Below are positions 2,065-62,202 of a DNA stretch of 64,000 nt, piece by piece; the first letter of the stretch is position 1, and each line of letters begins with the position of its first letter. The translations under genes and the position numbers were made by a program. Below the pieces are notes generated by a model. It was not told where the DNA came from, searched no databases, and was given only the letters and a program-made list of their open reading frames with translations. The stretch is from positions 248,001 through 312,000 of the IMG/VR virus record IMGVR_UViG_3300023179_000009, one strand, 5' to 3'.

Positions 2065-3381
2065 ATGAGCGAAACTTTCAAGGAAAATAAAATGAGTGCG
2101 TGCTGTTTTTGCGGACAAACTAAAAAAATGACCGGTCCTTTGGTTCAAGGAAATGGTCTTGGTGACGAACACCCCGTTTACATTTGTTATAGTTGTATTA
2201 AAAGTTGCGAGGAAGCACTTGCTGAAAAAATTTCAAGCATGCGGTCGGAGAACTTGAAGAAATTAAATGTTCCAAGTCCTGTTGATCTATATCAACACCT
2301 TAATCGATATGTAATTGGCCAAGATGTCGCCAAAAAGAAACTATCGGTAGAAGTTAGCAATCACTATCAAAGACTAATAGATAGTTACGAATTAAAATCT
2401 TTTAAAAACTCCGGAGATTGTTCCGTAGAAGATCCAGAACTTAGAGATGTTGAGATTGAAAAAAATAATATTCTTCTTGTGGGACCAACAGGAAGTGGAA
2501 AAACTTTATTGGCAAAAAGTTTAGCCGAAAAACTCAATGTTCCTTTTGCAATCGGTGACGCCACAACGCTCACTGAGGCTGGTTACGTGGGAGAAGATGT
2601 TGAAAATTTGCTTTTGAAACTCTTGGTTGCAGCAGACTACAACGTTGAAGAAGCACAAAGAGGCATTATCTATATCGATGAAATTGATAAAATTCGATCC
2701 ACTGGCGGAAATGTTTCTATTACAAGGGATGTGAGTGGACAAGGTGTTCAACAAAGTCTTCTTAAAATGATAGAAGGAACTGTTTGCAATGTTCCACCTC
2801 AAGGAGGTCGCAAACATCCAGAACAAAACTACATTCAGATTGATACAACTCATATTTTGTTTATTGTTGGCGGCGCTTTCGTTGGTTTAGAAGACATTAT
2901 TCGTCGTCGTTTAAGGAAGACTGCGATTGGTTTTAATGTTGAAAATCAGGTTACTGACGAAAGAAAAGAATACAACGATGTGATGAAGAAAGTTCGCCAA
3001 GATGATTTTATTGAATTCGGTATGATACCAGAGTTAATCGGCAGGCTTCCTGTGATTAGTTCTCTGGAAGAACTCTCGGTGGATGATTTGGTTCGTGTTT
3101 TAAAAGAACCCAAAAACGCCCTGCTAAAACAGGAGCGGAAGAAAATGTCTTACAAAGGCGTTGATCTTCAATTTACCGACGATGCCGTCACAAAAATTGC
3201 AGAAATTGCTATTGAAAAAGAAATTGGAGCACGTGCTTTAAGAAGTGTTCTTGGCGAGTTTATGACAGATCTTTACTTTGATCTTTCAGACGACTGTTCT
3301 GGAAAGTCTTATCTGGTCGATGTTGATGTTGTTTTGAATAAAAAGAAGCCCGTTTTGATGAACAAAAACGAGGCTGCTTAG
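2065..3381 (+). CDS. clpX: ATP-dependent Clp protease ATP-binding subunit ClpX
   Basis: C4 Zn finger (CFCG...ICYSC), YVIGQD.AKK, GPTGSGKT, DATTLTEAGYVGEDVE, IYIDEIDK, GGRKHP, IGF loop, PELIGRLP, GARALR. Confidence 0.95.
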   Translation: MSETFKENKMSACCFCGQTKKMTGPLVQGNGLGDEHPVYICYSCIKSCEEALAEKISSMRSENLKKLNVPSPVDLYQHLNRYVIGQDVAKKKLSVEVSNHYQRLIDSYELKSFKNSGDCSVEDPELRDVEIEKNNILLVGPTGSGKTLLAKSLAEKLNVPFAIGDATTLTEAGYVGEDVENLLLKLLVAADYNVEEAQRGIIYIDEIDKIRSTGGNVSITRDVSGQGVQQSLLKMIEGTVCNVPPQGGRKHPEQNYIQIDTTHILFIVGGAFVGLEDIIRRRLRKTAIGFNVENQVTDERKEYNDVMKKVRQDDFIEFGMIPELIGRLPVISSLEELSVDDLVRVLKEPKNALLKQERKKMSYKGVDLQFTDDAVTKIAEIAIEKEIGARALRSVLGEFMTDLYFDLSDDCSGKSYLVDVDVVLNKKKPVLMNKNEAA

Positions 3382-3660
3382 CTACAGATTATTCAGATAA
3401 TCAATTTCTTCTTCTGTTAAATTGTCAAAATTAATTTGATCTTTAATTTTTAATAAAATTTGATCTGCGATTAATTTTGATGAATTTGTCAAATCTAGTT
3501 CGTATTTTATATTCTCAATTTTTTGACTGTAGTCTTTGTAAAAAGAGATTATTTTTTCTTTTTTATTTTGCGAGTATAGACTAACAGCAATAAACATAGA
3601 CACTACGATGGTTGTTGCTGTCAATAGTTCAAGAAGAGATGTTCCTTTGCGTCCTTGCAT
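3382..3660 (-). CDS. small protein with prepilin-type N-terminal cleavage/methylation signal
   Basis: MQGRKG|TSLLELL followed by a hydrophobic helix, Glu at +5 as in type IV pilin signal peptides. Confidence 0.6.
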   Translation of the reverse strand: MQGRKGTSLLELLTATTIVVSMFIAVSLYSQNKKEKIISFYKDYSQKIENIKYELDLTNSSKLIADQILLKIKDQINFDNLTEEEIDYLNNL

Positions 3661-3740
3661 TTTTGCCCCATTTTATATGAAAAACATCAATGTTTTTCAT
3701 CAATATTTACTACTATTAATTTATATTTAGGAGCAAATTC

Positions 3741-4130: not shown

Positions 4131-5192
4131 ATGTGGGGCGATGCTTTTTGTGCTTTTCCATTTAATCGACTAAGAATAACATCCGAAGGCAATGCTTCTT
4201 TTTGTTGTTTTATGAGACCAGACCCTCTCAAAGCAGAGGAGGACGCTTATATCGGTAATGTTTTGAATAATACATTTGATGAGGTTTGGTTTGGAGAAAT
4301 TGCCGAGGAAATAAGACACGAAACACTCAAGGGCAATTTGCACAAAAAATGCCAATGTCCCGGTTGTCCTTATTTGCCGCTTAAAAAACCATACCCGATT
4401 CAGAACTTTATTTACAATGAGTATCCTAATTTCTTAGAAATAGATCTTCCGAATACCCATTGTAATGTTGGCGGATTAAAACCTCACCCGGAACACTCTC
4501 CAGCTTGCGTTATGTGTGAGCGATCAAGTCCAGTTTTCCGCCCAGAGAAAAATCATCTTTTTGAAGTTCTTGAAAAAATTAAGCACATCGTTCCCAACCT
4601 TTATCAAATACACGTTCAGGGAATAGCGGAACCTTTCTATCAAACAAGACAAGATGGATTTTTGTTGTTTGAAATTATGGATATTTTAGAATATGATAAC
4701 CATGCAGAGCAAATTACTTTAAGCATCACTACAAATGGAACCTTATTAAAACAAAATGTACGTGAGCAATATCTTAGGCGTGCTCCAAATTCTATTACTA
4801 ATTTTTCAATAGACGCCGCTACACCAGAAACTTTTAAAGCTATAAGAATATTTGATTGTTTTGATAAAGTTTTGGAGAATATGTATGCTTTTGATCAAGA
4901 GCGTGTTCGTGAGAAGCAGTTCTTGAAAATTCACAATAATATTAACATAATGAATGTGCATGAGGTTGTTGAGATGTGTCGAATTGCACACAAAGCAAGA
5001 GCGGAATTTGTTGAATTTAATCCAACAAATGGATTTAATCATAAGATTCTTGTGAACAAAAAAAATTGTGGTTTGTTTGCAAAAGCTCAACAAGATATTA
5101 TTGAAGAGTGCAATAAACTAGGACAGCCGGTTAACTTTATAAGACCACTTGACTTAAACTTAACCGACCAGTTGATACAACTCACTTTATGA
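4131..5192 (+). CDS. SPASM/twitch + radical SAM domain protein (paralog 1)
   Basis: N-terminal C.FPF..L.I...G....CC...IGN...W...C..C SPASM-like block; CNVGG-x-ACVMC (CX14CX2C); GIAEPF, TTNGTLL, FSIDAATPETF. Confidence 0.75.
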   Translation: MWGDAFCAFPFNRLRITSEGNASFCCFMRPDPLKAEEDAYIGNVLNNTFDEVWFGEIAEEIRHETLKGNLHKKCQCPGCPYLPLKKPYPIQNFIYNEYPNFLEIDLPNTHCNVGGLKPHPEHSPACVMCERSSPVFRPEKNHLFEVLEKIKHIVPNLYQIHVQGIAEPFYQTRQDGFLLFEIMDILEYDNHAEQITLSITTNGTLLKQNVREQYLRRAPNSITNFSIDAATPETFKAIRIFDCFDKVLENMYAFDQERVREKQFLKIHNNINIMNVHEVVEMCRIAHKARAEFVEFNPTNGFNHKILVNKKNCGLFAKAQQDIIEECNKLGQPVNFIRPLDLNLTDQLIQLTL

Positions 5193-5960
5193 TTTCTTTT
5201 TGTGTTTGAATTTTTTTTCAAATTTTAATAGTTTATACTGGAGGCAATTCCAAGGAATATGTGGTTGAATTATATCTATAAAACAATCATAGTCTATAGA
5301 TCCGATGTAGATCACATATTGAATTTGATTATTTTTGTTTTTTCTGCTCGGTACCGGACGAGTGTCTAGTTTCAAATCTTTTTTTATAAGACCAACTAAT
5401 CGTTCTACCTCAATTTTACTAAAATTGTGGGTACAAATAAATGCGTTGTTGCTTTTCCCAATGTATCCATCGTCACAGAACCAATAAGCTAATGTTAGAG
5501 GCGTTATGTTCAATTTTTCGGGCAATATCTTTTTTTCTTTTACATACCATTGATTTCTTAGTTTGGTAAAAATAGGATGACAACAGGTATGGTATAACAT
5601 TGTTTGTTCAACATAATTTTTCCCTTTCAAACTTCTGTTTTTTTCGTACATTTTTAGCGAGTTAGAGTAGGGTTGTAGTTCATCGTGCAAACTTTGTTGA
5701 TATTCTTGCATTGCCATCTTTTGACCTTTTTGAAAACGAGAATTGTGCGTTTCTTTTTTTGGTCGATCTAAATGAGCGTCACCTAATAATGAACCGACAA
5801 TAATCTCCATCTGCCTATCATTTATTTCAGGCAAACAAGGCACAAGACCTTTGCTTTTGCATTCCCTTGAGCAATTTTTTCTTAAATGAAACTCGGAGGG
5901 TTTTATTTCAAATATTTTACCACAAAATTGACAGGCTTTTTGTATTTTACATTTTTTCAT
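5187..5960 (-). CDS. LAGLIDADG homing endonuclease (two-motif type) with N-terminal Zn-finger
   Basis: IIVGSLLGDAHL and LAYWFCDDG motifs, CTHNFS..EV..L; N-terminal CQFCG...CSREC. Confidence 0.85.
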   Translation of the reverse strand: MKKCKIQKACQFCGKIFEIKPSEFHLRKNCSRECKSKGLVPCLPEINDRQMEIIVGSLLGDAHLDRPKKETHNSRFQKGQKMAMQEYQQSLHDELQPYSNSLKMYEKNRSLKGKNYVEQTMLYHTCCHPIFTKLRNQWYVKEKKILPEKLNITPLTLAYWFCDDGYIGKSNNAFICTHNFSKIEVERLVGLIKKDLKLDTRPVPSRKNKNNQIQYVIYIGSIDYDCFIDIIQPHIPWNCLQYKLLKFEKKFKHKKKS

Positions 5961-6007
5961 AATTATATGTATTCACATAGTTGTGTTTTTCTTAACAACA
6001 TAAACAC

Positions 6008-6190
6008 GTTGAATTTAATCCAACAAATGGATTTAATCACAAAATTTTAGTTAATGAAAAAAATTGTGGTTTGTTTGCAAAAGCTCAACAAGATATTATT
6101 GAAGAGTGCAATAAACTAGGACAGCCGGTTAACTTTTTGCGTCCTTTAGATTTAGGTTATACCGAACGGCTGATACAGTTGACTATATAG
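6008..6190 (+). pseudogene. orphaned duplicate of the last 60 codons of the radical SAM gene 4131..5192
   Basis: 183-bp copy of 5010..5192; translates VEFNPTNGFNHKILVNEKNCGLFAKAQQDIIEECNKLGQPVNFLRPLDLGYTERLIQLTI*; identical blocks alternate with recoded blocks. Confidence 0.9.
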
Positions 6191-7283
6191 TTAATTGTAT
6201 CAAGTCGTTCCCTACTACTTGTTCAAATTCCCTCACCATTTTAATGGGCATATTTATTTCTTTTGCTTTTTCTTTTGCTTTTTCAGAATTCTCTAAAAAA
6301 ACAGATACGTTATCTTTGGTGACCATTATATCTTGTATAGTTTTTTCTGATGTTAGTGATCCGCAGTCGTGAGTAGGATTGAATTGAATTTCATTAAAAT
6401 TATTATCTTTGGCAAAGACTACCATATCTTCCATTTCTTTCACGTTTAAAGTATTTATATTGTTATACATTATACTTCGATGGTTTTCTCCTTTTATTTT
6501 GTTGTATAAATTTAGATTTTTTTGAATTATTTCAAAAAAATCTCTTCTCCTTATACTTTTATAAGTTTCTTTTGTGGCAGCATCTATTGAAAAATAAATA
6601 AATGATTTTTTTACTATTTCTAGATATTTTTTTTGTAAAATTTCGTTAAAAATAGAACCATTGCTGTACGTCCAAAAATTAATATTATTTTGATATTTTT
6701 TAAATTCTATTTCTTCAAAAATTTCAAAAATTAAGTCCTTGTAGAAGGGCTCAGCCACACCCAAAACGGAGAATAAAATTAGGTTTGGAACAATACACTT
6801 TATTGAGTCTATAATTTTTTTTGTATTATTTAATTTAAAATTTTCACTTTTTCGAAAAACATCAAAATTTCTGGGACACATTACACAAGCTTGATTTTTA
6901 TCATTTGGATTTTCTCCACCTATGTTGCAATGTGTTGGTGGCAAATCTATCTCCAAAGATATTGGATAATTTTCTAAAAAAACTACTTTTTGATTATTTT
7001 CTTTTAAATTTTTGTTTATATAAGGACATCCACCCCATTCTTGACAATTATTATGCAATTCTCCATTTAAAGTTTTTTCTCTTATTTCTTTTGAAATACT
7101 ATTATTCCATATTTGTATGATATTATCTTTAAAAATATTGCCTAAAAATTTCCCTTGATAACAACACATTGTTACATCGCCGGTGACATTTATTTTTATG
7201 TGCCTAAATGGCATTTCACAAAAACTATAAATTATTTGTTTTTTATTTTTGAAGTTGGGATTTTGATTTTGATATTTGAACAT
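6183..7283 (-). CDS. SPASM/twitch + radical SAM domain protein (paralog 2)
   Basis: CEMPF...GDVTMCC...GN; CNIGG-x-ACVMC (CX13CX2C); GVAEPF, SNGS, FSIDAAT; C-terminal LIQLTI. Confidence 0.75.
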   Translation of the reverse strand: MFKYQNQNPNFKNKKQIIYSFCEMPFRHIKINVTGDVTMCCYQGKFLGNIFKDNIIQIWNNSISKEIREKTLNGELHNNCQEWGGCPYINKNLKENNQKVVFLENYPISLEIDLPPTHCNIGGENPNDKNQACVMCPRNFDVFRKSENFKLNNTKKIIDSIKCIVPNLILFSVLGVAEPFYKDLIFEIFEEIEFKKYQNNINFWTYSNGSIFNEILQKKYLEIVKKSFIYFSIDAATKETYKSIRRRDFFEIIQKNLNLYNKIKGENHRSIMYNNINTLNVKEMEDMVVFAKDNNFNEIQFNPTHDCGSLTSEKTIQDIMVTKDNVSVFLENSEKAKEKAKEINMPIKMVREFEQVVGNDLIQLTI

Positions 7284-7334: not shown

Positions 7335-8276
7335 ATGAGCGTTTGTTTTGAAGAAAATAAGCACATTATATACTACTGGTGGAATGATAATCCCAATATT
7401 AAACCACATCAAGATTTAAAAAGTCCAGTAATTTTGTCGATAGCAACCCTTAGATCTTTTCACAAAAACGTCCCAGTAACAATTTTTGATATTAGTGATT
7501 TTGAAAGACCAAAAGAGGACTGGAAAGACTTTCAAAATATTTTAAATTTCGACGTAGTTAAAACAACAACAGATTTGAATACTTCTTCTCCAAGATATTG
7601 GAAACTTTGTTCAAAAATTGCAGATATTTCTAAAAATATACAATTTTTAAAAGAAGATAATATTGTATTTGTAGACTCCGATATTTTTTTTCTTCAACAA
7701 ATTTTTCCTTTGAAATATGAAGAGCAATTAGATAAAAATTTTTATTGTTACCCACACAACACCGGATTTTTTTACTTTAATAAAAACTTAGAATCAAATA
7801 AGGAAATATTTGAACTTTGGGCTAACACAATAAATAAATGTTTAATAGACGAAGATTTTTTTACAGAGGTGTGCTTAAAGATAAACGATTATTCAACAAA
7901 AAGTCTTCATGACGAAATTAGTTTAAGATATTTGATCAAAGAAAAAAAAATAAATAATATAAAAAACTTAGACATCTCCGAGAGTTTTGTTTTCAATCAA
8001 ACCCAAATATACGCTGCTAATTACGGAAGAATTGATAGTGAAAATTTTTTAAAACTAAAACATAAAATTAAATTTATTCATGCGATGTTAATTTATAATG
8101 GGCCAAAAAGAGGTTTACTTTGCTTAATAATCGAAGAATTAAAACAAGCAATTAGCAAATCTTTGAATGCTGAATTAATTAAAAAAATATTTAGAAATGA
8201 TATTGTAATTCCAAGTTACAATATTGATTTAATTATTAAAATGTCACATAAGCAACTCTATTGTCTACTTAATTAA
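7335..8276 (+). CDS. putative nucleotide-diphospho-sugar transferase
   Basis: LSIATLR...NIVFVDSDIFF (DxD), NTGFFYF, DE and IHAM motifs typical of GT-A folds; clustered with GT2 genes. Confidence 0.5.
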   Translation: MSVCFEENKHIIYYWWNDNPNIKPHQDLKSPVILSIATLRSFHKNVPVTIFDISDFERPKEDWKDFQNILNFDVVKTTTDLNTSSPRYWKLCSKIADISKNIQFLKEDNIVFVDSDIFFLQQIFPLKYEEQLDKNFYCYPHNTGFFYFNKNLESNKEIFELWANTINKCLIDEDFFTEVCLKINDYSTKSLHDEISLRYLIKEKKINNIKNLDISESFVFNQTQIYAANYGRIDSENFLKLKHKIKFIHAMLIYNGPKRGLLCLIIEELKQAISKSLNAELIKKIFRNDIVIPSYNIDLIIKMSHKQLYCLLN

Positions 8277-9817
8277 TTTTCTTGTGGTATTGAAATTAGT
8301 TCTATATCATCTTTTTCTTTAAAATCATACAAAGCATCACTATAAGTGTTGCATATAGGCTTCCCAGGTCCATTTAAACTTGTATTTATTATACACTCAC
8401 TCCCAGTTATTCTACCGTACTCAACAAGTAGTTCGTGTAACCAAGGATCTTTTTCCTTGTGAACCACTTGCGGCCTACTACTGTTGTCTTTGTGTACAAT
8501 TGCTGGACACTCCATTTTTGCTGCCAGATTACATTCACAACGATACTGCATGTATTCTCCTTTGGGACCAGTAAAATATCTGTCGAAGCTTTCTGCGGTT
8601 ACCATCGGAGCTAATGGGCGATAATATTCTCTTCCTTTTAACTCTTGCGAGACACGTTTTAAATTCTCATACTTACTGGCATTTGCTAATATAGATCTGA
8701 AACCCAAAGCTCTAGGGCCACACTCCGCTTTTCCACGAAGCAAGCCCACAACTTTATCTTGGGCTATCAGCTTCGCTATTTCTTTTGGCTCTTGTGGCCC
8801 TATTTTTGACAGAGGTTCTTGCAAATACATTATTGAAGGTGTTTTTAAAGCTTTTGGCCATTTTCCTTTATCTAAAAAATAACCATAAGAAGCGGCCCCC
8901 AAAACTAAACCACTATCATTTATAGCTGGTCCGAAAACAAAATCCTTAACGTAACTTGCTATATTAGTGTTCAATTCAAGAGCTAAACATGTTCCACCGC
9001 CGACCACTATTCCTAATTCTTTGTTTGGGATAAAATTTTCTAAATTCTTTTTTATTGAATCCCATGTACGATTTATCCAAAATTTATAAAATTTTGCTAT
9101 AAATTTAAGATCCTCTTCAGACGGATTGGGAAACCAAGGAAAACTTGGAATATACTCTTGTTGTCCGGGGGTCCACAACCACGCTGGGGGTGGCATATAA
9201 GGTTTTGTGAAAGATTCGACTAATCTCACAATATCATCCTCAGAAATTTTTTCTTTTGTGTCTTCTAAAAAACCAGACAACCCCATAGCTTTACCGGCAC
9301 TATTAAAACCCAACATCGACCCCAAACTACAACTGCTTGGTATAGGTGGGTCACACACTTTTAAAGAAAACCCATCTTCATTAATCATTCCGCAAAAACA
9401 ACTTCCTAAAACCATGCCATCTGCGTTTGGGCCAGCGCCGTCAAAAGCCAAAGCAAATCTTGTTTCGTCATTTTTTCTAAAAAACCAAGAAGATAATATA
9501 TGGCATAAGTGATGGCTTATGCAGTAGTTTGGCTCATATCTTATGTTTTTTTTCATCCACTCACTGAAGGTTGATTTCATTGCAACAACCGGATGTTGCC
9601 CTTCTATTGTTTCATAATTTAATCCCATGGGTGGCACGCAAACGATATCTTCTTTACTTGGAGGAGGAATAAAATCTAATATTTCTGCCAGACTGTTTTC
9701 TGTTTTTACTCGTTTACCATAACGTTCTGCGTGTGCGTAAAATTCCAAATTGCCACTCTCGTCAAGAATAGCCACTCCAGAATCGTGATAACCACCATAA
9801 AATCCATAATATCTCAT
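8273..9817 (-). CDS. carbamoyltransferase (CmcH/NodU family)
   Basis: HDSGVA, ERY.KR.K, HHLCH, DGAG, GKAMGL, GG..LN, DSGLVLGAA, ECGPRALGFRSILA, RPLAP, H.DNSSRPQ, INTSLN.PG.PI. Confidence 0.9.
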   Translation of the reverse strand: MRYYGFYGGYHDSGVAILDESGNLEFYAHAERYGKRVKTENSLAEILDFIPPPSKEDIVCVPPMGLNYETIEGQHPVVAMKSTFSEWMKKNIRYEPNYCISHHLCHILSSWFFRKNDETRFALAFDGAGPNADGMVLGSCFCGMINEDGFSLKVCDPPIPSSCSLGSMLGFNSAGKAMGLSGFLEDTKEKISEDDIVRLVESFTKPYMPPPAWLWTPGQQEYIPSFPWFPNPSEEDLKFIAKFYKFWINRTWDSIKKNLENFIPNKELGIVVGGGTCLALELNTNIASYVKDFVFGPAINDSGLVLGAASYGYFLDKGKWPKALKTPSIMYLQEPLSKIGPQEPKEIAKLIAQDKVVGLLRGKAECGPRALGFRSILANASKYENLKRVSQELKGREYYRPLAPMVTAESFDRYFTGPKGEYMQYRCECNLAAKMECPAIVHKDNSSRPQVVHKEKDPWLHELLVEYGRITGSECIINTSLNGPGKPICNTYSDALYDFKEKDDIELISIPQEN

Positions 9818-9875: not shown

Positions 9876-10955
9876 ATGTTAAAAAACCCAGATAACCAAT
9901 CAACCAATTTTGCTTTTTGCTCCAATCCTTTCACGAAAGTGATATTAACCAGTTGGGGCGAAGTTTCTATGTGCTGCCATCAACATACCCAACTGGGAAA
10001 ATTAGACGAAAAAACCGATATTTTGGATATTTGGAATAATTTTGTTGCAAAAGAAATAAGAGAATTTACAAAAAATGGAAAATTGCACCCAGTTTGTTTT
10101 TCTTGGAATGTTTGTCCATTTATCACTAAGTTAAAAAAACCTTTTTATTTTGAATCTTATAAAAATTCTCGTTTTCCAATATTTTTAGAAATATGTTTGC
10201 CGGATAAGCATTGCAATATCGGCGGAGAAACACCTGATGAGGATAACCCAGCTTGCATTATGTGTGCAAGAAACTTTCACAAGCCAGACCAGCCGGATAT
10301 GACAGATTTTTTATGCGAAAAAGCAAAATCATTAATGCCCTATTTAAGATTTTTAAGTGTTTTGGGCATAGCAGAACCTTTTTGGAAGGATGCAGTTTTT
10401 AGAATTTTTGAAAAACTAGATTTTAAAAAATATAAAAATGAAATAGAATTTACAACAAATACTAATGGAACTTGTTTGAACGAGAAAACATCATTAAAGT
10501 TTTTTAATTCAACTACTAAATCTAATATCTCTTGGTCATTAGACGCTGCCGATCCAATTACTTTTAAAAAAATTAGAAGACTTGATTTGTATGACCAAGT
10601 AATAGAGAATTTAAAAAGATGGATTAAAATGAGAGAAAAATTTGGTGGCAAAAAACAACACAGAGTTTCTATTTACAACAACATAAACATGTTAAACGTT
10701 CACGAAATGTCTAAAATGGTGGAAACAGCACACAAGTTAAATGTTGAAAAACTAACAATGATCCCCACCTCAGACCAATTAGGCATTGTAAAATTGGGAG
10801 ATTTGTTGCTCAATAAAAAAAACGTTGATCTTTTTAAACAAGAGTCTGAGAAAGCGACGAGTCTGGCAAAAAAATTAGGTGTAGAATTAGAATATCCTAA
10901 ATGTTTTGATCTGGTTCCTCCCACTGTTGAGCAGTTGGTTCAATTAAGCATTTGA
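9876..10955 (+). CDS. SPASM/twitch + radical SAM domain protein (paralog 3)
   Basis: CSNPF...GEVSMCC; CNIGG-x-ACIMC (CX13CX2C); GIAEPF, NTNGT, SLDAA; C-terminal LVQLSI. Confidence 0.75.
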   Translation: MLKNPDNQSTNFAFCSNPFTKVILTSWGEVSMCCHQHTQLGKLDEKTDILDIWNNFVAKEIREFTKNGKLHPVCFSWNVCPFITKLKKPFYFESYKNSRFPIFLEICLPDKHCNIGGETPDEDNPACIMCARNFHKPDQPDMTDFLCEKAKSLMPYLRFLSVLGIAEPFWKDAVFRIFEKLDFKKYKNEIEFTTNTNGTCLNEKTSLKFFNSTTKSNISWSLDAADPITFKKIRRLDLYDQVIENLKRWIKMREKFGGKKQHRVSIYNNINMLNVHEMSKMVETAHKLNVEKLTMIPTSDQLGIVKLGDLLLNKKNVDLFKQESEKATSLAKKLGVELEYPKCFDLVPPTVEQLVQLSI

Positions 10956-26841: not shown

Positions 26842-27996
26842 ATGGAATATTATCATTGGCAAACTATGGTTGATGAACATCGTTGGATTCATCGACAAGA
26901 CAAAAAGAGAGTTCGTAATCTGACTGATGCTCAGATTAGGGATATTGAAATGGAGAATATATTGACTACTCCATTTAAAAAAGAGTCTAATCGTTGGCGC
27001 AGAGTGATTCGTTTGACAGGAGAAAATGTTTGGATCAATGCTGGCAAGCCATACTACAACATTCACCCTCAAATGGTTAGGTCGCTTTGCAATACAAATT
27101 TAGACAAGATACCAGCAAATTTGATCGAAGTTCCGGCGGGTCTGGAGGCAGTAGTTTTTAGATTTGCCGAGGATGTTCCGATTCGCCATATCTCAAATGA
27201 TGGATTTCACACTGTGGCAGCAGATGAGGTGCATCATTCTCCCATTTATTGTAGATCAGTTTTGTTTGGAAAAATAAAAAACGATCATTCAAAAAATGTA
27301 GCTGAAAATATAAAGAAAACCGCAGGAGATTTTTTTCAATTAATGAACATGCCTTCTTTAAGCGACAGTGTAAAATCTGTTATAGATATGGCCTCTGAAG
27401 GCTTTTATAAAGATGTTGATGACTTTATGATAATGTGTGTTGACGAAGGCTTTAGAGTTAAAGATCGTGGCGTTGATAGAAGTTTGTGTAATTTGATCAC
27501 TATTAATTGCAAACATGGTCAAAGCGTCTCAGAAGCAATACAGACTACCGTAGAACAAGCCTCCGCTGGTGAACAGGCTGTTATGGTTACTATGGGTAAT
27601 CGTTTATCAAATCTAATTCGTGTGATCGTATCTGCTGGTTTTTTGGCAAATTGTCCTGAAGACGATTTGGTTGTCCCAGATATTTTGAGTGCTGATAAAC
27701 AAAGTTTCAAAGATGCCTCTCAACGTGGAGATTCGGCGGCAATCCAAACTATTGTTGAGCGTGCAAAAAGGCGTGGCAAAAACGGTTACAATATCGGCAC
27801 ATCAGAGATGTTCGTCTCAGAGAACGAATCTGAACATCAAAAACAATACGATAGCACCGGCAAACAATTAAGTTTTAGCCACTTACGTGGTGGTCATCCT
27901 CATGCCGTCAGATATGGTGAGGGCAAAAATAAAGTAAAAATTAAATGGTTTAGACCAACTAGAGTCAGGCCGGATCTGCCATTTAAAAATGTTTAA
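26842..27996 (+). CDS. hypothetical protein
   Basis: 384-aa ORF, C-terminal HLRGGH..VRYG.G....KWF.P motif. Confidence 0.6.
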   Translation: MEYYHWQTMVDEHRWIHRQDKKRVRNLTDAQIRDIEMENILTTPFKKESNRWRRVIRLTGENVWINAGKPYYNIHPQMVRSLCNTNLDKIPANLIEVPAGLEAVVFRFAEDVPIRHISNDGFHTVAADEVHHSPIYCRSVLFGKIKNDHSKNVAENIKKTAGDFFQLMNMPSLSDSVKSVIDMASEGFYKDVDDFMIMCVDEGFRVKDRGVDRSLCNLITINCKHGQSVSEAIQTTVEQASAGEQAVMVTMGNRLSNLIRVIVSAGFLANCPEDDLVVPDILSADKQSFKDASQRGDSAAIQTIVERAKRRGKNGYNIGTSEMFVSENESEHQKQYDSTGKQLSFSHLRGGHPHAVRYGEGKNKVKIKWFRPTRVRPDLPFKNV

Positions 27997-28067: not shown

Positions 28068-29111
28068 GTGGACACTCAAGAAGATTTTGACTTTCTTAAA
28101 GCAATAGAAAACACAGAGCCCGACTTTGTTCGGGCATACCTTGGAGGCATTAAGTCAGATATGTCTAAGACAAATGTTCAACTTACCGTTCGTCAGTGCG
28201 CATCTTTACTTGGCGTTTGCCAGAATACTGTTCTCAACCACATCAAAGCAAACAAATTAAAAGCCAAACTTGTTGAAGGCCAGTGGTTTATACAAGAAAG
28301 CGATTTTGATTCATACAGGTCGTCTATTGTTGTTTCAAAAGGAAAAGATAGTCGTTCGATTATAAGATTTTCTAAAAAATCAAAAGAAACTAAAGTTTCT
28401 TCAAACAAAGAAGAGGTTCATGTCATGGATGAAAAAATTCGTTATCAAAAAGCAACCTCAAGAACTGTCACAGACTTTCTTCACGATTGGCACCGCAACA
28501 AGTCGTCCGGATTTTCCTTGTTGACTATTTGCAGAGACTTTAACCAAGTTTCAGCAAATCCAACCAATGAAAATCAGATGAGCGGGATTTTGTCATCGCT
28601 TAGAAACAAGGGAATAGTTATCCGCAAAGGCAAGGGCATTTACCAAGTTAGCCCTTCAATTGTCGGAGAAATAATTGAAGATCAATCGCATTCAACTACA
28701 GATACCACTCCAGAAACACAGGCAACTTTAATCGACACAGACATTGAGCAAATTCGCACTTCTTTGAAAAAGACTGAGCGAATGGCTGTTGAGGCTTTTA
28801 TAAGAAATCATGCTTCTCCCGGTGTTGATTTTTATTTTACAATCGCTGATGTTGCTCGTGAGTATCCGCATCTTGATCGCAACAAACTCGGCAAAGCTTG
28901 CGTTAACATGTGCCAAACCGGCAAACTTGTAAAGAGCCAAGGTTTGGGAGAATATGTTAAGCAAACTAAAGAAAACCATGTGCAAGAACGAAATCAGAGT
29001 GTCAAGCAACCTTCTACCGATAGCGTTCTTGAAAAAATTAATCGAATCATCAACTCTGACTTTGAAGATAAATTTAAAGAGGAACTTATAAAAGGAATTA
29101 TGCAAAATTAA
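28068..29111 (+). CDS. multi-HTH DNA-binding protein (excisionase-like HTH at N-terminus)
   Basis: LTVRQCASLLGVCQNTVLNHIKANKLKA..V.GQWFI; later wHTH-like LSSLRNKGIV...GKGIY; upstream TTGACG-16-TATCAT (28011-28038). Confidence 0.65.
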   Translation: MDTQEDFDFLKAIENTEPDFVRAYLGGIKSDMSKTNVQLTVRQCASLLGVCQNTVLNHIKANKLKAKLVEGQWFIQESDFDSYRSSIVVSKGKDSRSIIRFSKKSKETKVSSNKEEVHVMDEKIRYQKATSRTVTDFLHDWHRNKSSGFSLLTICRDFNQVSANPTNENQMSGILSSLRNKGIVIRKGKGIYQVSPSIVGEIIEDQSHSTTDTTPETQATLIDTDIEQIRTSLKKTERMAVEAFIRNHASPGVDFYFTIADVAREYPHLDRNKLGKACVNMCQTGKLVKSQGLGEYVKQTKENHVQERNQSVKQPSTDSVLEKINRIINSDFEDKFKEELIKGIMQN

Positions 29112-29117
29112 TTTTTC

Positions 29118-29154
29118 ATGGAAAAAAATCTTTTACCAAAAGAAGAACTAAATC
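29118..29154 (+). repeat. left copy of 37-bp direct repeat (mscL 5' end) flanking the cas-CRISPR cassette
   Basis: ATGGAAAAAAATCTTTTACCAAAAGAAGAACTAAATC, identical to 31770..31806. Confidence 0.95.
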
Positions 29155-29155
29155 T

Positions 29156-30781
29156 ATGTTAGAACAAGAAGAAAATAATTGTGTTGTTATTAAAGTTCCA
29201 TTGATTTGTAACCAAAAGCAAATTAAATTGCTTAAAAGTAGATTTAATTCTTCTAGAGTTTTTTATAATTCTTGTTTAGCAGAGTGCGAAAGAAGAAGGA
29301 AAATTCTTGTCGTTCATCCTAATCGTATCGAAGCCAATAGAATATACAAAGAATTAAAAGAAAAAGACAAACAAGTTAAAGAAAAAAAAATTACTAGAAG
29401 TTCTTATGACTTTAAAAAGAACAAAGAACTCTATAGTTCTCTTTATCGAAAATCTGAGAGGGAGACGGGTTTTTATTTAAGATCTAGTGCCACAAATGAT
29501 ATGACAAATTCTTTAGAACAATGGGTTTCGAATGTAAGAAATGGAACCAATATTGAAAAAGAGTTGGATAGCCACACCTGTATGACTTTAATGGATCGAG
29601 CATTTAAAGCATCTAAAAGAGTTTTAAATGCTCGATGGGTATTTAATAAGAAAAAAAACACTTACATAAAACCATCGGTTCAGTTTAAGAGTGTAAAAAA
29701 ACCAATCCTTAGCATTTCTAGCAAAAGCCAAAAATCTTCTCTTAAATTTTTATTAGAAAGCAAAACAATTCGGGTTCCTCATGTCGTTTGGACAATTAAC
29801 AAAAAAGCAATATGGCCTATTTTAAATTTGGACCCAATTGATCCTTATCATAACTTTTTAATTGAAAACTACCACAAAGTGGGTCATATTAAATTGTGTC
29901 GTGAAGAAATTAAAGGAAAGTGGGTTTATTCTATGCAGGCTACTTGTAGCATAGATTCAATGAGTAAATTTTATTTGGGAGTTAAACCAAAATATTTAGG
30001 TGAAGGTGTTTGTGGAGTTGATATTGGAGCAAGCGACTTTGCCTTTTCAGCACCGAACCACTCGGAAATTACAAAATTATTTCCGGAGTTTGATTTAGGT
30101 GTTGAGAAAAAGTTAAAGCAACTACACAAACAAAATTCTCGTATGCTCAGACAGAACAACCCAAACAATTTTGAGCCTGATACTTGGGAAAAAAATCCCA
30201 ATGGCAAACTAATTAAGAAATTTGGATCACAAAAAAAGGGTTGCAAAAATTTTATTAGCAAAAGGCACAAAAAAGTGCTACTTCAGATGAAGGAAATTTA
30301 TAGAAAACTCAAAGAAAGTCGTAGCATTTCTCATAAAAAAGCGGCAATTCGCTTACGTTCAAAAGCCGACAATCTAAGAATGGAAGATCTCAACTATTTT
30401 TCGTGGCAAAAAGGCGGCATGGGCAAATCATCCCAAATACGCTCTCCCGGACTATTTAGTAAAACTTTAGAGAACACATTCAAAAAAACCGGCGGTAAGG
30501 TTGAAAAAATTGATCCTTTTAAATCTTGTCTTTCGCAAATTTGTCCCAATTGCGGAAGCAAAAAAAAGAAAGAAAGAAGTCAGGATTGGCACGAGTGCGA
30601 AGAGTGCGGTTACGGTAAGAAATTTCCAGTTCAAAGAGACTTGAATTCTGCTATGCTTGCGTGTACAGTTGATTTGAAAACTCAAACTGTCGATGTGGAA
30701 GAAGCCAAAAAACTTCTTCGGGATAGAGGACCGATCCTGCGGACGACATCGGCTAGTTTTAAAAAAGGTGCGAAGAACTAG
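29156..30781 (+). CDS. compact type V CRISPR effector (TnpB/Cas12-like RuvC nuclease, 541 aa)
   Basis: TnpB-like N-terminus (R.FYN.CL), RuvC-I GVDIG (D289), RuvC-II MEDL (E410), Zn finger CPNC...CEEC, RuvC-III QRDLNSA (D495); adjacent to a CRISPR array. Confidence 0.85.
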   Translation: MLEQEENNCVVIKVPLICNQKQIKLLKSRFNSSRVFYNSCLAECERRRKILVVHPNRIEANRIYKELKEKDKQVKEKKITRSSYDFKKNKELYSSLYRKSERETGFYLRSSATNDMTNSLEQWVSNVRNGTNIEKELDSHTCMTLMDRAFKASKRVLNARWVFNKKKNTYIKPSVQFKSVKKPILSISSKSQKSSLKFLLESKTIRVPHVVWTINKKAIWPILNLDPIDPYHNFLIENYHKVGHIKLCREEIKGKWVYSMQATCSIDSMSKFYLGVKPKYLGEGVCGVDIGASDFAFSAPNHSEITKLFPEFDLGVEKKLKQLHKQNSRMLRQNNPNNFEPDTWEKNPNGKLIKKFGSQKKGCKNFISKRHKKVLLQMKEIYRKLKESRSISHKKAAIRLRSKADNLRMEDLNYFSWQKGGMGKSSQIRSPGLFSKTLENTFKKTGGKVEKIDPFKSCLSQICPNCGSKKKKERSQDWHECEECGYGKKFPVQRDLNSAMLACTVDLKTQTVDVEEAKKLLRDRGPILRTTSASFKKGAKN

Positions 30782-30980
30782 TACTCACTCTAATTGAAAA
30801 ATTAGTTTGCCGAAAAATCTACTTTTTAGAAAAACACCTAAAGAGTCAGAGTACCTCGTCCGTGAAACTACGAGCGATTTAGAATGACAGCCCTCATCGG
30901 AATAGTTTTAAATCGTCGTGGTCTCGTCTTTTGTTGCGAGAGGTACGGTGGCGTTAAAAACCGCCGTACCTCTCGTTTTT
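30782..30980 (+). ncRNA. putative tracrRNA (5' end uncertain)
   Basis: Anti-repeat CTCGTCTTTTGTT (30923-30935) pairs with repeat AACAAAAGATGAG (one G-U). TGACAGCCCTCATC (30885-30898) is partly complementary to the repeat 3' end. Long stem at about 30868-30885/30905-30921; ends in a terminator. Confidence 0.7.
30937..30980 (+). terminator. intrinsic terminator
   Basis: 15-bp stem CGAGAGGTACGGTGG / CCGCCGTACCTCTCG, 9-nt loop, followed by TTTTT. Confidence 0.8.
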
Positions 30981-31073
30981 ACTTAAATACTGTGTTGTCA
31001 ATGATTTACAGAACTCTTATTTTGTTTTTTGATATTTGATGGATCTAAATTTTAACAACCTCTCGCAAAGGTC

Positions 31074-31102
31074 TTGTTTTTTGTTGTGGTTTTTTGTATA
31101 AT
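31074..31102 (+). promoter_or_regulatory. sigma70-like promoter in CRISPR leader
   Basis: TTGTTT (31074-79) - 17 bp - TATAAT (31097-31102), 11 bp before repeat 1. Confidence 0.6.
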
Positions 31103-31113
31103 TTTAATGTGCT

Positions 31114-31772
31114 ATTGCAGTACTTAAAACAAAAGATGAGTATGTCAAGTGGTCTCTAGGGCATCGTTGGCGTCTCGGTAAACCAAATTGCAGTACTTAA
31201 AACAAAAGATGAGTATGTCAAGAGGGCATCGTTGGCGTCTCGGTAAACCAAATTGCAGTACTTAAAACAAAAGATGAGTATGTCAAGGACATTGAGAAGG
31301 TACTCGGAATCTTGTTCGGGGGATTGCAGTACTTAAAACAAAAGATGAGTATGTCAAGGTGCTGCTCAGGCGTTAGTGGAGGTTTGTTGGTAGCCAATTG
31401 CAGTACTTAAAACAAAAGATGAGTATGTCAAGAATTAGCGGCAGTACGAGCCACCGACCATCAGCAGATTGCAGTACTTAAAACAAAAGATGAGTATGTC
31501 AAGGAAACCCAAGTCCATAGACGCAAGAGGCAAAAACGGATTGCAGTACTTAAAACAAAAGATGAGTATGTCAAGTACCGATGGGCTACCAAAAACATCG
31601 CCAGGGCGGCAAAATTGCAGTACTTAAAACAAAAGATGAGTATGTCAAGATGACCAAGGCAAAAACCCGCCATTGCAGTACTTAAAACAAAAGATGAGTA
31701 TGTCAAGGTCAAGTGGCGTATTATTAGACAACGTGAGTTCTCATTGGATTTCAGTGCTTAAAACAAAAGATG
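31114..31772 (+). CRISPR. CRISPR array, 9 identical 36-bp repeats + 1 degenerate truncated repeat, 9 spacers
   Basis: Repeat ATTGCAGTACTTAAAACAAAAGATGAGTATGTCAAG at 31114, 31187, 31252, 31323, 31397, 31468, 31540, 31614, 31672. Partial ATTTCAGTGCTTAAAACAAAAGATG at 31748. Spacer lengths 37, 29, 35, 38, 35, 36, 38, 22, 40. Orientation taken from the leader, the degenerate trailer repeat and the anti-repeat. Confidence 0.97.
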
Positions 31773-32195
31773 GAAAAAAATCTTTTACCAAAAGAAGAAC
31801 TAAATCGTTATAAGCAATTTGCTTTTAAAGACGATATGTTCAAATTGGCTATAGGTTTTATTTTAGGCAATTCTTTCAATAATGTGGTTGGTGGAATTAG
31901 CAGTTTTCTAATTATGCCGGTGGTTAATTTTTTAACTACACAAACAGGAGAGAATTGGAGAACTATTGTTTTTTCGCCAGTGAGTGGTTTGGATTTTGAA
32001 CTAGGAAAACTTTTAGGAACTTTTGTAGATTTTTTACTAACATCTATTGTTCTTTATGTAATTTACGTTAAAATTTTAGGGTCAATAAAAAAACAAGAAG
32101 AAGATTGTAATTTGAAACAATGCAATCGTTGTCTAAGTTTAATTCATGTTGACGCAACAAGATGCAAGTTCTGCACCAGCCCAATTAAAAAATAA
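31770..32195 (+). CDS. mscL: large-conductance mechanosensitive channel MscL family protein
   Basis: YKQFAFK.D...LAIGFILGNSF..VV......IMP, G.LLG..VDFL; C-terminal C..C...I...ATRC.FCTS Zn ribbon; the ATG is supplied by the truncated last CRISPR repeat. Confidence 0.8.
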   Translation: MEKNLLPKEELNRYKQFAFKDDMFKLAIGFILGNSFNNVVGGISSFLIMPVVNFLTTQTGENWRTIVFSPVSGLDFELGKLLGTFVDFLLTSIVLYVIYVKILGSIKKQEEDCNLKQCNRCLSLIHVDATRCKFCTSPIKK

Positions 32196-47306: not shown

Positions 47307-47350
47307 AAATAGAATAAAAAGTAAGGAAACAAGAAAGCAAAGACAAAATT

Positions 47351-47425
47351 CCGAGAGTAGCTCAATTGGTCAGAAGCGCCGCTCTCATAAAGCGGATGTT
47401 GTGGGTTCAAGTCCCACCTCTCGGA
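47351..47425 (+). tRNA. tRNA with CAT anticodon (Met or Ile2)
   Basis: Acceptor CCGAGAG/CTCTCGG, anticodon arm CCGCT-CTCATAA-AGCGG, T arm GTGGG-TTCAAGT-CCCAC; CCA not encoded. Confidence 0.9.
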
Positions 47426-47426
47426 T

Positions 47427-61511: not shown

Positions 61512-61583
61512 GCCGATGTAGCACAACGGCAGTGCAATTGATTTGTAATCAATAGGTTGGAGGTTCAAATCCTCTCGTCGGCT
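61512..61583 (+). tRNA. tRNA-Thr(TGT)
   Basis: GCCGATG/CGTCGGC acceptor, ATTGA-TTTGTAA-TCAAT anticodon arm, GGAGG-TTCAAAT-CCTCT T arm. Confidence 0.9.
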
Positions 61584-61587
61584 CTTT

Positions 61588-61659
61588 GGCCCTGTGGTGA
61601 AATAGATATCACAACTCTCTTCTAAAGAGTTATTCCTCGTGCGATTCGAGGCAGGGCTA
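61588..61659 (+). tRNA. tRNA-Arg(TCT)
   Basis: GGCCCTG/CAGGGCT acceptor, ACTCT-CTTCTAA-AGAGT anticodon arm, CCTCG-TGCGATT-CGAGG T arm (atypical TGC loop). Confidence 0.8.
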
Positions 61660-62202
61660 CTTTTTTCTAATGTATTTTTTTGTGTTTATTTCTTCATGTA
61701 CTTCTCGGTGACAATTAGAACAAAACAAGTTGCATTTATCTAATTCTCGCTTCATTTCTTCATTAAAACACCGTTGCTTTGCGTGGGCTATTGTAAAGTC
61801 TTTTTTAGATGGATCTTTGTGATGAAACTCTAGAGCTGCCTTGCATTTTTTATACCCGCATTTTTCACATTTTCCTCCCTTGTACTTAATCATTTTTAAT
61901 TTAATTTGTCTTTGTCTTGCGATTGTCTGCTCATTGGTGCATATTTTGCAATAAACAGAAGAGTTTGGCTTTCCTCTTCGTGAATAAAAATCTTCTGTAG
62001 GAACCTGTTCTTTACATCGAGGACAAAAGCGGAATTCCCCGTACTCCCCTGTGGGCTTGTCTTTAAATGTGACAAACTTTGATTTTAGTTCATGTTTTTT
62101 AGTCCAGTAACGGATAGTGGTTAAAGACTTGCCAGTTTTTTTACTAATTTGATTTAATGATAAATTTTGATTGATATAATTTTCAAGAATATGTTTTTCC
62201 AT
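61657..62202 (-). CDS. HNH endonuclease with N-terminal HTH and Zn finger (paralog of 47427..47972)
   Basis: KGGKCEKCGY...ALEFHH.DP..K...ELDKCNLFCSNCHREVH; its stop codon overlaps the tRNA-Arg 3' end. Confidence 0.85.
   Translation of the reverse strand: MEKHILENYINQNLSLNQISKKTGKSLTTIRYWTKKHELKSKFVTFKDKPTGEYGEFRFCPRCKEQVPTEDFYSRRGKPNSSVYCKICTNEQTIARQRQIKLKMIKYKGGKCEKCGYKKCKAALEFHHKDPSKKDFTIAHAKQRCFNEEMKRELDKCNLFCSNCHREVHEEINTKKYIRKK

Follow-up and report, generated by a model that had tools for sequence, protein, structure and literature searches.

A candidate TranC-like miniature type V CRISPR cassette in the genome of a freshwater megaphage

The repeated and independent capture of TnpB nucleases by CRISPR arrays is established, and forty further V-U branches have been reported (PMC10691335). 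The TranC intermediates were described by Jin et al. (Cell 2025), according to the summary given in PMC13565253. Some TranC systems occur in viruses and are directed against phages (bioRxiv 10.64898/2026.03.27.714800; PMC13565253), and the Caudoviricetes TranC9 (CauTranC9), which is aimed at phages, depends on a tracrRNA (trans-activating CRISPR RNA) (bioRxiv 10.64898/2026.03.27.714800). In addition, the Cas12p 'hacker' is a rare, phage-associated and tracrRNA-dependent effector of 500-700 amino acids (aa) with a 37-nucleotide (nt) repeat, and it was described as an early TnpB intermediate (bioRxiv 10.1101/2025.01.20.633832). Here, we analyzed a comparable cassette in a 64,000-nt stretch of viral DNA (positions 248,001 to 312,000 of the IMG/VR record IMGVR_UViG_3300023179_000009; hereafter the window, whose coordinates are used below). 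The cassette includes a 541-aa effector gene, a candidate tracrRNA and a nine-spacer array. From sequence evidence, we consider it a genuine, probably active, adaptation-less and TnpB-derived 'TranC-like' miniature type V cassette, which is most likely used against rival phages (probability about 0.72). A preliminary description of this stretch had proposed a compact TnpB-derived type V-like unit on a phage contig, and all its parts were found, namely the open reading frame (ORF), the catalytic triad, the zinc finger, the RNA region and the array.

The source contig is listed in IMG/VR as a viral genome (uncultivated virus genome 3300023179_000009; 458,813 bp; freshwater metagenome). We conclude that the carrier is a freshwater megaphage of ~459 kb and that the cassette lies in a hypervariable accessory region. 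The cassette was recovered free of any difference in two further metagenomes (three samples in all), and its effector ORF was intact in three independent assemblies. The gene content was investigated using Pfam on ~55 ORFs of at least 100 aa, together with precomputed Pfam matches for the central 13.6 kb. No Cas1, Cas2, Cas4, TnpA or other recombinase was found in the 64-kb window by these Pfam scans, and transposon ends were not searched for. This agrees with the preliminary description, which had noted no adaptation or transposase genes. Since Cas1 and Cas2 are absent, the spacer set is probably fixed, and it is identical in the three metagenomes.

The effector gene (29156-30781, plus strand) encodes a candidate RNA-guided nuclease with the TnpB/Cas12 fold, as indicated by its ORF, Pfam, NCBIfam, alignments, an AlphaFold 2 model and Foldseek. 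The alignment with homologues placed the acidic residues of RuvC I, II and III at D289, E410 and D495, and the C4 zinc finger at C463/C466/C481/C484, as had been read before from the single sequence. Among 60 family members, D289 is invariant and the conservation of E410 and of D495 is 90% or more; the zinc finger is invariant in a 10-member subclade. The segment R332...G362 (RQNNPNNF...KKG, residues 332-362) had been pointed out as an insert. It is indeed missing from the canonical 389-aa TnpB, but it is common to the whole family (N335 invariant, R332 and P336 at least 90% conserved in the 60 sequences) and is not a feature of this protein. In the Pfam search, the effector matched Cas12f1-like_TNB (5.9e-9) and, weakly, the IS605 OrfB helix-turn-helix (HTH) model. 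The NCBIfam model guided_TnpB (NF040570) matched residues 65-500 at 77.2 bits, which is under its cut-off of 100, and the IS607_TnpB model scored 28 against a cut-off of 350. Furthermore, PHROG 506 'transposase' matched at 2.4e-34, far better than the PADLOC Cas12 models did. The AlphaFold 2 model was confident (predicted local distance difference test 89, predicted template modelling score 0.82).

A search of 5.8 billion proteins revealed only two close clusters, P0002 (75% identity; on the contigs L001 of 119 kb and L002 of 23 kb) and P0003 (82% identity; on L004). Their loci lie on phage contigs and show the same downstream RNA region followed by an array, and the spacers are all different. 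The repeats of the window, L001/L002 and L004 arrays share the core AAAACAAAAGATGAG..TGTCA.G. The P0003 gene is frameshifted in a run of ten A (L004:1300-1320), which gives ORFs of 85 and 434 aa; this is either a sequencing error or a real disruption.

Downstream of the effector gene lies a conserved and structured non-coding region (30841-30985, plus strand), a candidate tracrRNA that was delimited by the three-locus alignment, RNAalifold, a covariance model and a duplex scan. It is near-invariant in the three close loci and more conserved than the protein. RNAalifold predicted a long imperfect hairpin, a short single-stranded stretch and, at 30936-30976, a G+C-rich hairpin of 16 bp, which together with the T-run behind it resembles the end of an intrinsic terminator. 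In five lineages, 87.5% of the cells of this hairpin are paired vs ~40% when the partners are slid; there are 4 compensatory pairs, and the covariation score was reached by 1 of 500 shuffles. In addition, the covariance model of the three close loci found the element at the corresponding place in two further loci, L039 and L040 (21.6 bits, E = 0.0015). Directly 5′ of the terminator-like hairpin is the 13-nt anti-repeat CTCGTCTTTTGTT (30923-30935), which is predicted to pair with AACAAAAGATGAG at -25.4 kcal/mol vs -16.7 ± 2.5 for shuffles. The strongest duplex between the repeat and the non-coding sequence occupies the same relative position in four loci (window, L001, L004 and L040); in L040, the anti-repeat and the repeat differ in sequence from the window type, and the position is kept. 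Thus, 30923-30935 is the best-supported anti-repeat candidate, and the locus has what marks tracr-dependent systems, namely a conserved RNA that is not translated and contains a stretch able to pair with the repeat. The preliminary description had also placed a helper RNA between gene and array; such an RNA is supported, and the anti-repeat is this one and not the inverted repeat nearest the array. That inverted repeat (31013-31028) pairs with the repeats, but it is not conserved in L001 and falls outside the three best duplexes. No Rfam match was found in 29000-32000.

The array (31114-31747, plus strand) consists of nine identical 36-nt repeats (ATTGCAGTACTTAAAACAAAAGATGAGTATGTCAAG) and nine spacers. 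The identical repeats span 31114-31707, and repeat 1 begins 332 nt past the effector stop codon, a distance that confirms the one first reported. The spacers are 37, 29, 35, 38, 35, 36, 38, 22 and 40 nt long in order, and spacer 2 is spacer 1 minus its first 8 nt. They have 42-57% G+C vs 35.6% for the window. A degenerate terminal (tenth) repeat follows (31748-31783, plus strand). Over its first 25 nt, it departs from the repeat at 2 positions, and its guide-adjacent 3′ part (AGTATGTCAAG) is replaced by the coding sequence of the next gene, MscL, whose start codon coincides with the internal ATG of the repeat. The end at 31772 that had been given to the cassette is not kept, as it falls at this ATG inside the degenerate repeat.

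Some further details of the array were observed. Spacer 9 opens with GTCAAG (31708-31713), which duplicates the six bases that end the repeat, and spacer 8 has just 22 nt; both look like recombinational remodelling of the array. Meanwhile, the 3′ ends of the spacers are biased. Spacers 1, 2 and 7 of the window (array 31150-31671) end with CAA(A), four of the five spacers of L001 (11999-12312) with CGCCCG[AC](A)(A)A, and four of the eleven spacers of L040 (2916-3687) with GCA. This 3′-end motif comes from the protospacer, because the CAA of L001 spacer 4 occurs in the homologous target gene.

The leader of the array carries a candidate promoter, read from the sequence as TTGTTT-17 nt-TATAAT (31074-31102, plus strand). 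Its TATAAT is perfect (31097-31102) and lies 12 nt ahead of repeat 1, and the promoter is kept in L004; the promoter scan did not call it because the -35 box matches at 3 of 6 positions. In addition, the alignment revealed a second copy of the hairpin 3′-arm box, CCTCTCGCA, in the leader (31059-31067, plus strand), ~90 nt past the hairpin. This box covaries with the hairpin 5′ arm across lineages, and equivalent boxes are present at L001:11908-11916, L039:2774-2782 and L037:5720-5728 (CCGCTCGCA in L037). It could serve in an alternative RNA pairing or as a protein operator half-site.

The cassette has an exact 37-bp copy of the MscL 5′ end on either side. The left copy (29118-29154, plus strand) begins 6 nt past the stop codon of the gene HTH347, and the right copy (31770-31806, plus strand) is the true MscL start, beginning at the ATG inside the degenerate repeat. 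There are two exact copies, whereas none is expected from shuffles. MscL itself (31770-32195; Pfam 1.4e-16) is a homologue of the large-conductance mechanosensitive channel and lies directly downstream of the array; in the related locus L010, the encoded protein is 95% identical. The left copy, with the next bases, forms a 14-codon mini-ORF (29118-29162; duplicated MscL start MEKNLLPKEELNLC), whose stop lies 2 nt past the effector ATG. No obvious Shine-Dalgarno sequence precedes the effector gene in the window, unlike in L001 (AAGGAG). Given this and the overlap with the mini-ORF, effector translation may be coupled.

An exhaustive profile search collected 4,314 relatives, 642 of them below 1e-30 and mostly of ~500 aa. 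In a tree of 60 relatives, the effector is on a long branch inside an 11-member clade (Shimodaira-Hasegawa-like approximate likelihood ratio test, 100), with the remaining members of which it shares 31-36% identity. The contexts of four clade members are phage-like, and none has a transposase. P0075 (35% identity, on L040) is accompanied by an array with at least 12 repeats, which end with GGTCAAG, three or four short units of repeat sequence accompany P0059 and P0020, and the repeats throughout the clade end with G[TC]CAAG. The distant members on L005 and L013 have no array, and a search of IMG/VR for related loci gave distant TnpB-like genes only, 13 of 15 without a repeat cluster. The nearest relatives are phage-borne solo TnpB-like genes, some of which carry one to a few guide units. 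The CRISPR association is thus a conserved property of the lineage, which itself branches from within the solo TnpB-like genes of phages.

L039 and L040 are identical over 2,864 nt and share the same 525-aa effector and RNA region. L039 has one repeat (2829-2864) followed by a DNA polymerase III alpha gene, and L040 has at least 12 repeats (2880-3723). We set aside a natural single-guide state as the cause, since the difference may be an assembly collapse of the array. In addition, repeat-derived sequence is located a short way upstream of the effector start, or across it, at L040:1045-1075 (= L039:994-1024; 17 of 18 nt of the 3′ half of the repeat) and at L004:1063-1098 (23 of 36 nt, P ~0.015). 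Thus, repeat-like sequence may flank the cassette on both sides. An origin of the first effector codons from the 3′ part of the repeat was not significant in the window (P = 0.68) or L001 (P = 0.17), and was suggestive only in L004 and L039/L040.

A Foldseek search of the effector model against the PDB returned RNA-guided nucleases exclusively (E from 1e-13 to 1e-10, template modelling (TM) score ~0.5, identity 9-16%). The best matches were Cas12p, ISDra2 and ISFba1 TnpB, several Cas12f, LaTranC and Cas12m2. In this modelled fold, Cas12p, TnpB, Cas12f and TranC are about equally distant from the effector. In the PDB sequence search, the effector alone gave a single chance zinc-ribbon match and nothing relevant. 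The family profile matched LaTranC best (1e-18), then Cas12n 9j09 (1.5e-15) and ISDra2 TnpB (1e-12), and each of these three matches was confined to the RuvC/TNB half. Furthermore, the PADLOC hidden Markov models (HMMs) of Cas12u4 (3.7e-12; residues 419-519), Cas12f (5.7e-12; residues 331-507 or 429-517) and Cas12u2 gave comparable scores of ~1e-11 to 1e-12 on the C-terminal part only. The nearest ESM Atlas clusters were long TnpBs of the 'ISChy9 orfB' type (TM ~0.8). At the sequence level, we assign the effector to no characterised Cas12 subtype. In the broad sense it can be called a Cas12, having a split RuvC (D..E..D) of TnpB ancestry and linkage to an array across homologues.

From these features, a mechanism can be proposed for the cassette. 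The 541-aa nuclease would be translated, possibly by coupling to the leader ORF of 14 codons that the insertion left behind. From the conserved region after the gene would come a tracrRNA of ~140 nt that ends at the intrinsic-terminator-like hairpin, and its 13-nt anti-repeat (30923-30935) would pair, in a precursor CRISPR RNA transcribed from the leader promoter, with the AACAAAAGAUGAG core of every repeat. The spacer past the conserved repeat end ...GUCAAG would then guide the ribonucleoprotein to complementary DNA next to a protospacer adjacent motif (PAM), where the RuvC site would cut. The likeliest targets would be related phages that are richer in G+C and rivals for the same host. In this scheme, we infer the boundaries of the tracrRNA, the processing of the CRISPR RNA (crRNA), the cleavage of DNA, the PAM and the targets of the window's own spacers.

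The idea of phage targets comes from L001. We compared the spacers of four arrays with every fetched locus at the nucleotide and peptide levels, and the only matches were those of L001 spacers to homologues in their own contig. In L001, 28 of the 37 nt of spacer 4 agree with the phage's own 242-aa gene, and 30 of the 35 nt of spacer 5 agree with its 137-aa gene. Translated, the spacers give the same peptides as the two genes (TDMHKLLMTQH and VYATTCEAAARQ), and all five mismatches scored for spacer 5 are at third codon positions. Because the mismatches are synonymous, spacers 4 and 5 were probably acquired from the corresponding genes in a related phage of higher G+C content; the L001 phage has 43% G+C, and its spacers have 50-64%. 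The carrier of L001 is thus predicted to escape self-targeting through synonymous differences. This pattern is as expected for phage-against-phage interference, and we extend it to the window by inference. It also speaks for a use against competing elements, which had been suggested before, as the spacers of this relative point to competing phages.

Several points weigh against our interpretation. The argument on phage competition rests on the array of a relative (L001) and not on that of the window, whose scanned spacers gave no protospacer in IMG/VR, Joint Genome Institute (JGI) metagenomes, GTDB genomes and GenBank phages. The BlastN search of 29000-32000 against GenBank phages and the exact search of spacer 1 in IMG/VR gave self matches or nothing, and so did wobble patterns of spacer 3 in JGI metagenomes and of spacers 5 and 7 in IMG/VR. 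There was no match in GTDB (one genome per species, 185,579 species) for the wobble pattern of spacer 6 or the exact spacer 8, nor in IMG/VR for the wobble pattern of L001 spacer 5. In addition, the irregular spacer lengths (22-40 nt) and the one duplicated spacer could mean a decaying array, and the 5′ end and promoter of the tracrRNA were not identified.

The site of the cassette suggests another explanation. It could be a selfish, TnpB-style homing element, whose guide cuts cassette-less genomes so that repair copies the cassette in, and the array would then be secondary. The guide would come from read-through of the last repeat into the flank, or from a spacer against the insertion site. 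The exact bracket of the downstream gene's start is in keeping with this, as is its size, since many spacers of these arrays are about 37 nt long. Furthermore, L010 (87% nucleotide identity) is an empty-site allele, which runs from an AcrVA2-like gene straight to MscL without HTH347 and without the cassette, and L018, in which an HTH gene is directly followed by DUF6915, is the empty site for the L001 position. The cassette is found in three different contexts, namely after HTH347 (L001), after a 190-aa gene (L004) and after HTH347 plus the 37 bp (window). The repeat fragments just upstream of the effector in L039/L040 and L004, and the fact that the nearest relatives are solo TnpB-like phage genes, fit as well. 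However, the terminal repeat lacks the clade-conserved, guide-adjacent G[TC]CAAG end, which argues against a working guide that reads the flank, and a functional guide of this kind would also match the left 37-bp copy in its own genome. Most spacers are clearly not derived from the flank. Moreover, in L017 a methyltransferase gene (L017:7062-7960) lies between the HTH gene and DUF6915 and is preceded by a 16/20-nt remnant of the DUF6915 start. This insertion has the same architecture as the 37-bp duplication of the window but involves no nuclease. Taken together, the L017 remnant and the window duplication suggest that short 5′-end duplications are a general mark of gene insertion in the variable region. 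RNA-guided homing of the cassette is possible but unlikely. We also regard as improbable that it is an autonomous mobile CRISPR cassette, which spreads by RNA-guided cutting of cassette-less megaphages and then recombination at spacer-length homology. If so, the 37-bp duplication would be the footprint of the event and the split terminal repeat its scar, and the surrounding clade would capture the transition from TnpB to CRISPR under way inside phage genomes.

The composition of the spacers leads to a question about the host. The array might be aimed at the bacterial host, for example shutting down host genes or resident elements during infection. The spacers of the window are richer in G+C than the phage, none of them matches the window or related phage loci, and spacer 8 reads as a gene start (ATG ACC AAG...). 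However, the L001 phage shows that G+C-rich spacers are compatible with phage targets, the only traceable spacers of the family come from homologues of phage genes, and two spacers had no match in the 185,579 species. We consider a host target improbable as well. The irregular spacers, the duplicated spacer, the degenerate terminal repeat and the static array might also indicate that the locus is no longer active, or that its protein regulates by binding DNA without cutting it, in the manner of Cas12m, Cas12c or TldR. This is very unlikely, since the RuvC acidic triad and the zinc finger are intact and conserved, the nine repeats show 100% identity, the RNA region is visibly constrained with compensatory changes, and the ORF is intact in each of the independent assemblies. 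Interference against rival phages thus remains our preferred explanation.

The neighbouring genes are typical of very large phages. The 64 kb encode ClpX-like and other AAA proteins, LAGLIDADG and HNH endonucleases, a DNA methylase, a sigma-like factor, DNA and RNA ligases, UvdE, an SNF2 helicase and MscL. There are three radical SAM/SPASM genes; two of them lie within 4131-7283, with a LAGLIDADG homing endonuclease gene (5187-5960, minus strand) between them, and the third is at 9876-10955. A carbamoyltransferase gene (8273-9817) and two glycosyltransferase genes (170-2007) are located nearby, and together these genes may form a modification or biosynthesis cluster. Three tRNA genes (Met-CAT, Thr-TGT and Arg-TCT) were found at 47350-47426, 61512-61584 and 61588-61660.

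Two genes upstream of the effector, a gene for a 384-aa protein (26842-27996, plus strand) has a precomputed Pfam match to PF26125, AcrVA2-like. AcrVA2-like proteins are an anti-Cas12a family. The label was not reproduced, as there was no match in the local Pfam copy, PHROGs, PADLOC or the PDB. Homologues of this gene occupy the same variable region in L010, L017 and L018.

The lineage is very rare, with only three clusters at 90% identity among the 5.8 billion proteins, and its guide apparatus can be read from the sequence as a 541-aa protein, a ~140-nt RNA and a 36-nt repeat. The clade offers a natural series for the change from a transposon nuclease with a single RNA to a tracrRNA with an array, and for phage-versus-phage deployment. 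In addition, the effector is one more candidate for a small genome editor, whose value hinges on its PAM and activity; Cas12f, Cas12n, Cas12p and TranC have already been published.

Among the known systems, CasPhi (Cas12j) and CasLambda likewise belong to phages and are type V systems with one effector and no cas1/cas2, thought to oppose competing elements, but they have ~700-800 aa and are tracr-independent. CasLambda2 was a weak fold match (E ~5e-4, TM 0.38/0.29), and Cas12j was absent among the matches listed. The preliminary description had set the cassette against such tracr-independent phage effectors, a premise that is outdated because Cas12p 'hacker' and CauTranC9 are phage-associated and tracr-dependent. 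Cas12f (V-F) and Cas12n (V-U4) are likewise miniature tracr-dependent effectors, and Cas12f shares the fold (TM ~0.5). However, their HMM matches are C-terminal only, no full-length match to Cas12f models or structures was found (structural identity 12-15%), the cassette of the window has no adaptation genes, and the tree puts the effector among phage solo TnpB-like genes. The link to V-U4/Cas12n that had been drawn from motifs is not specifically supported, since the partial Cas12u4 match is no better than those of Cas12f and Cas12u2, and Foldseek aligned 9j09 over 303 columns with E = 3e-4 and TM 0.21/0.39.

The TnpBs of IS200/IS605 and IS607 (for example ISDra2, PDB 8h1j/8exa) have the same fold as the effector and share the guided_TnpB match over residues 65-500. 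Their RNA is encoded by the 3′ end of the gene and the sequence beyond it and carries the guide on its 3′ side, as in the window. Unlike TnpB, the window has a multi-spacer array and a separate anti-repeat RNA in place of the single omega-RNA guide; moreover, the guided_TnpB score is below cut-off, and no recombinase was found in the 64 kb. Cas12p (type V-P, PDB 9jfs/9jg3) is the top Foldseek match (E = 7.5e-13, TM 0.54). It shares the fold only, as the identity is 14% and there is no sequence match to 9jfs/9jg3. Furthermore, the Cas12p repeat ends with AAAC, which forms a pseudoknot with UUUG, whereas the repeats of the window end with GTCAAG and those of its clade with G[TC]CAAG. Cas12p also has a thioredoxin-binding insertion and a GTN PAM.

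The TranC systems (LaTranC, PDB 9jfo/9jfq, and the phage-borne CauTranC9) are the closest in organization. Like the window, they have a TnpB-sized effector with the RuvC triad and a zinc finger, an array of 32-38-nt repeats with few spacers, a tracrRNA between the gene and the array, and no cas1/2/4. The name TranC fits the cassette in a descriptive sense only, by its near-TnpB size, its array, its anti-repeat RNA and its position among phage TnpB-like proteins. The effector matches LaTranC in the RuvC/TNB half alone, and the identity in the structural alignment is 12-13%. An undescribed branch had been suggested at the outset. The effector is indeed not near-identical to any characterised subtype, having no PDB sequence match and only partial HMM matches, but the kind of system is already published. 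Because phage-encoded, tracr-dependent miniature Cas12/TranC systems have been reported, the novelty is moderate. As far as can be read from its genes and RNA, the system of the window appears to work like Cas12p or TranC9, but it is no sequence-level member of any system compared here. We conclude that it represents a lineage that is rare and uncharacterised, within a type of system that is already known.

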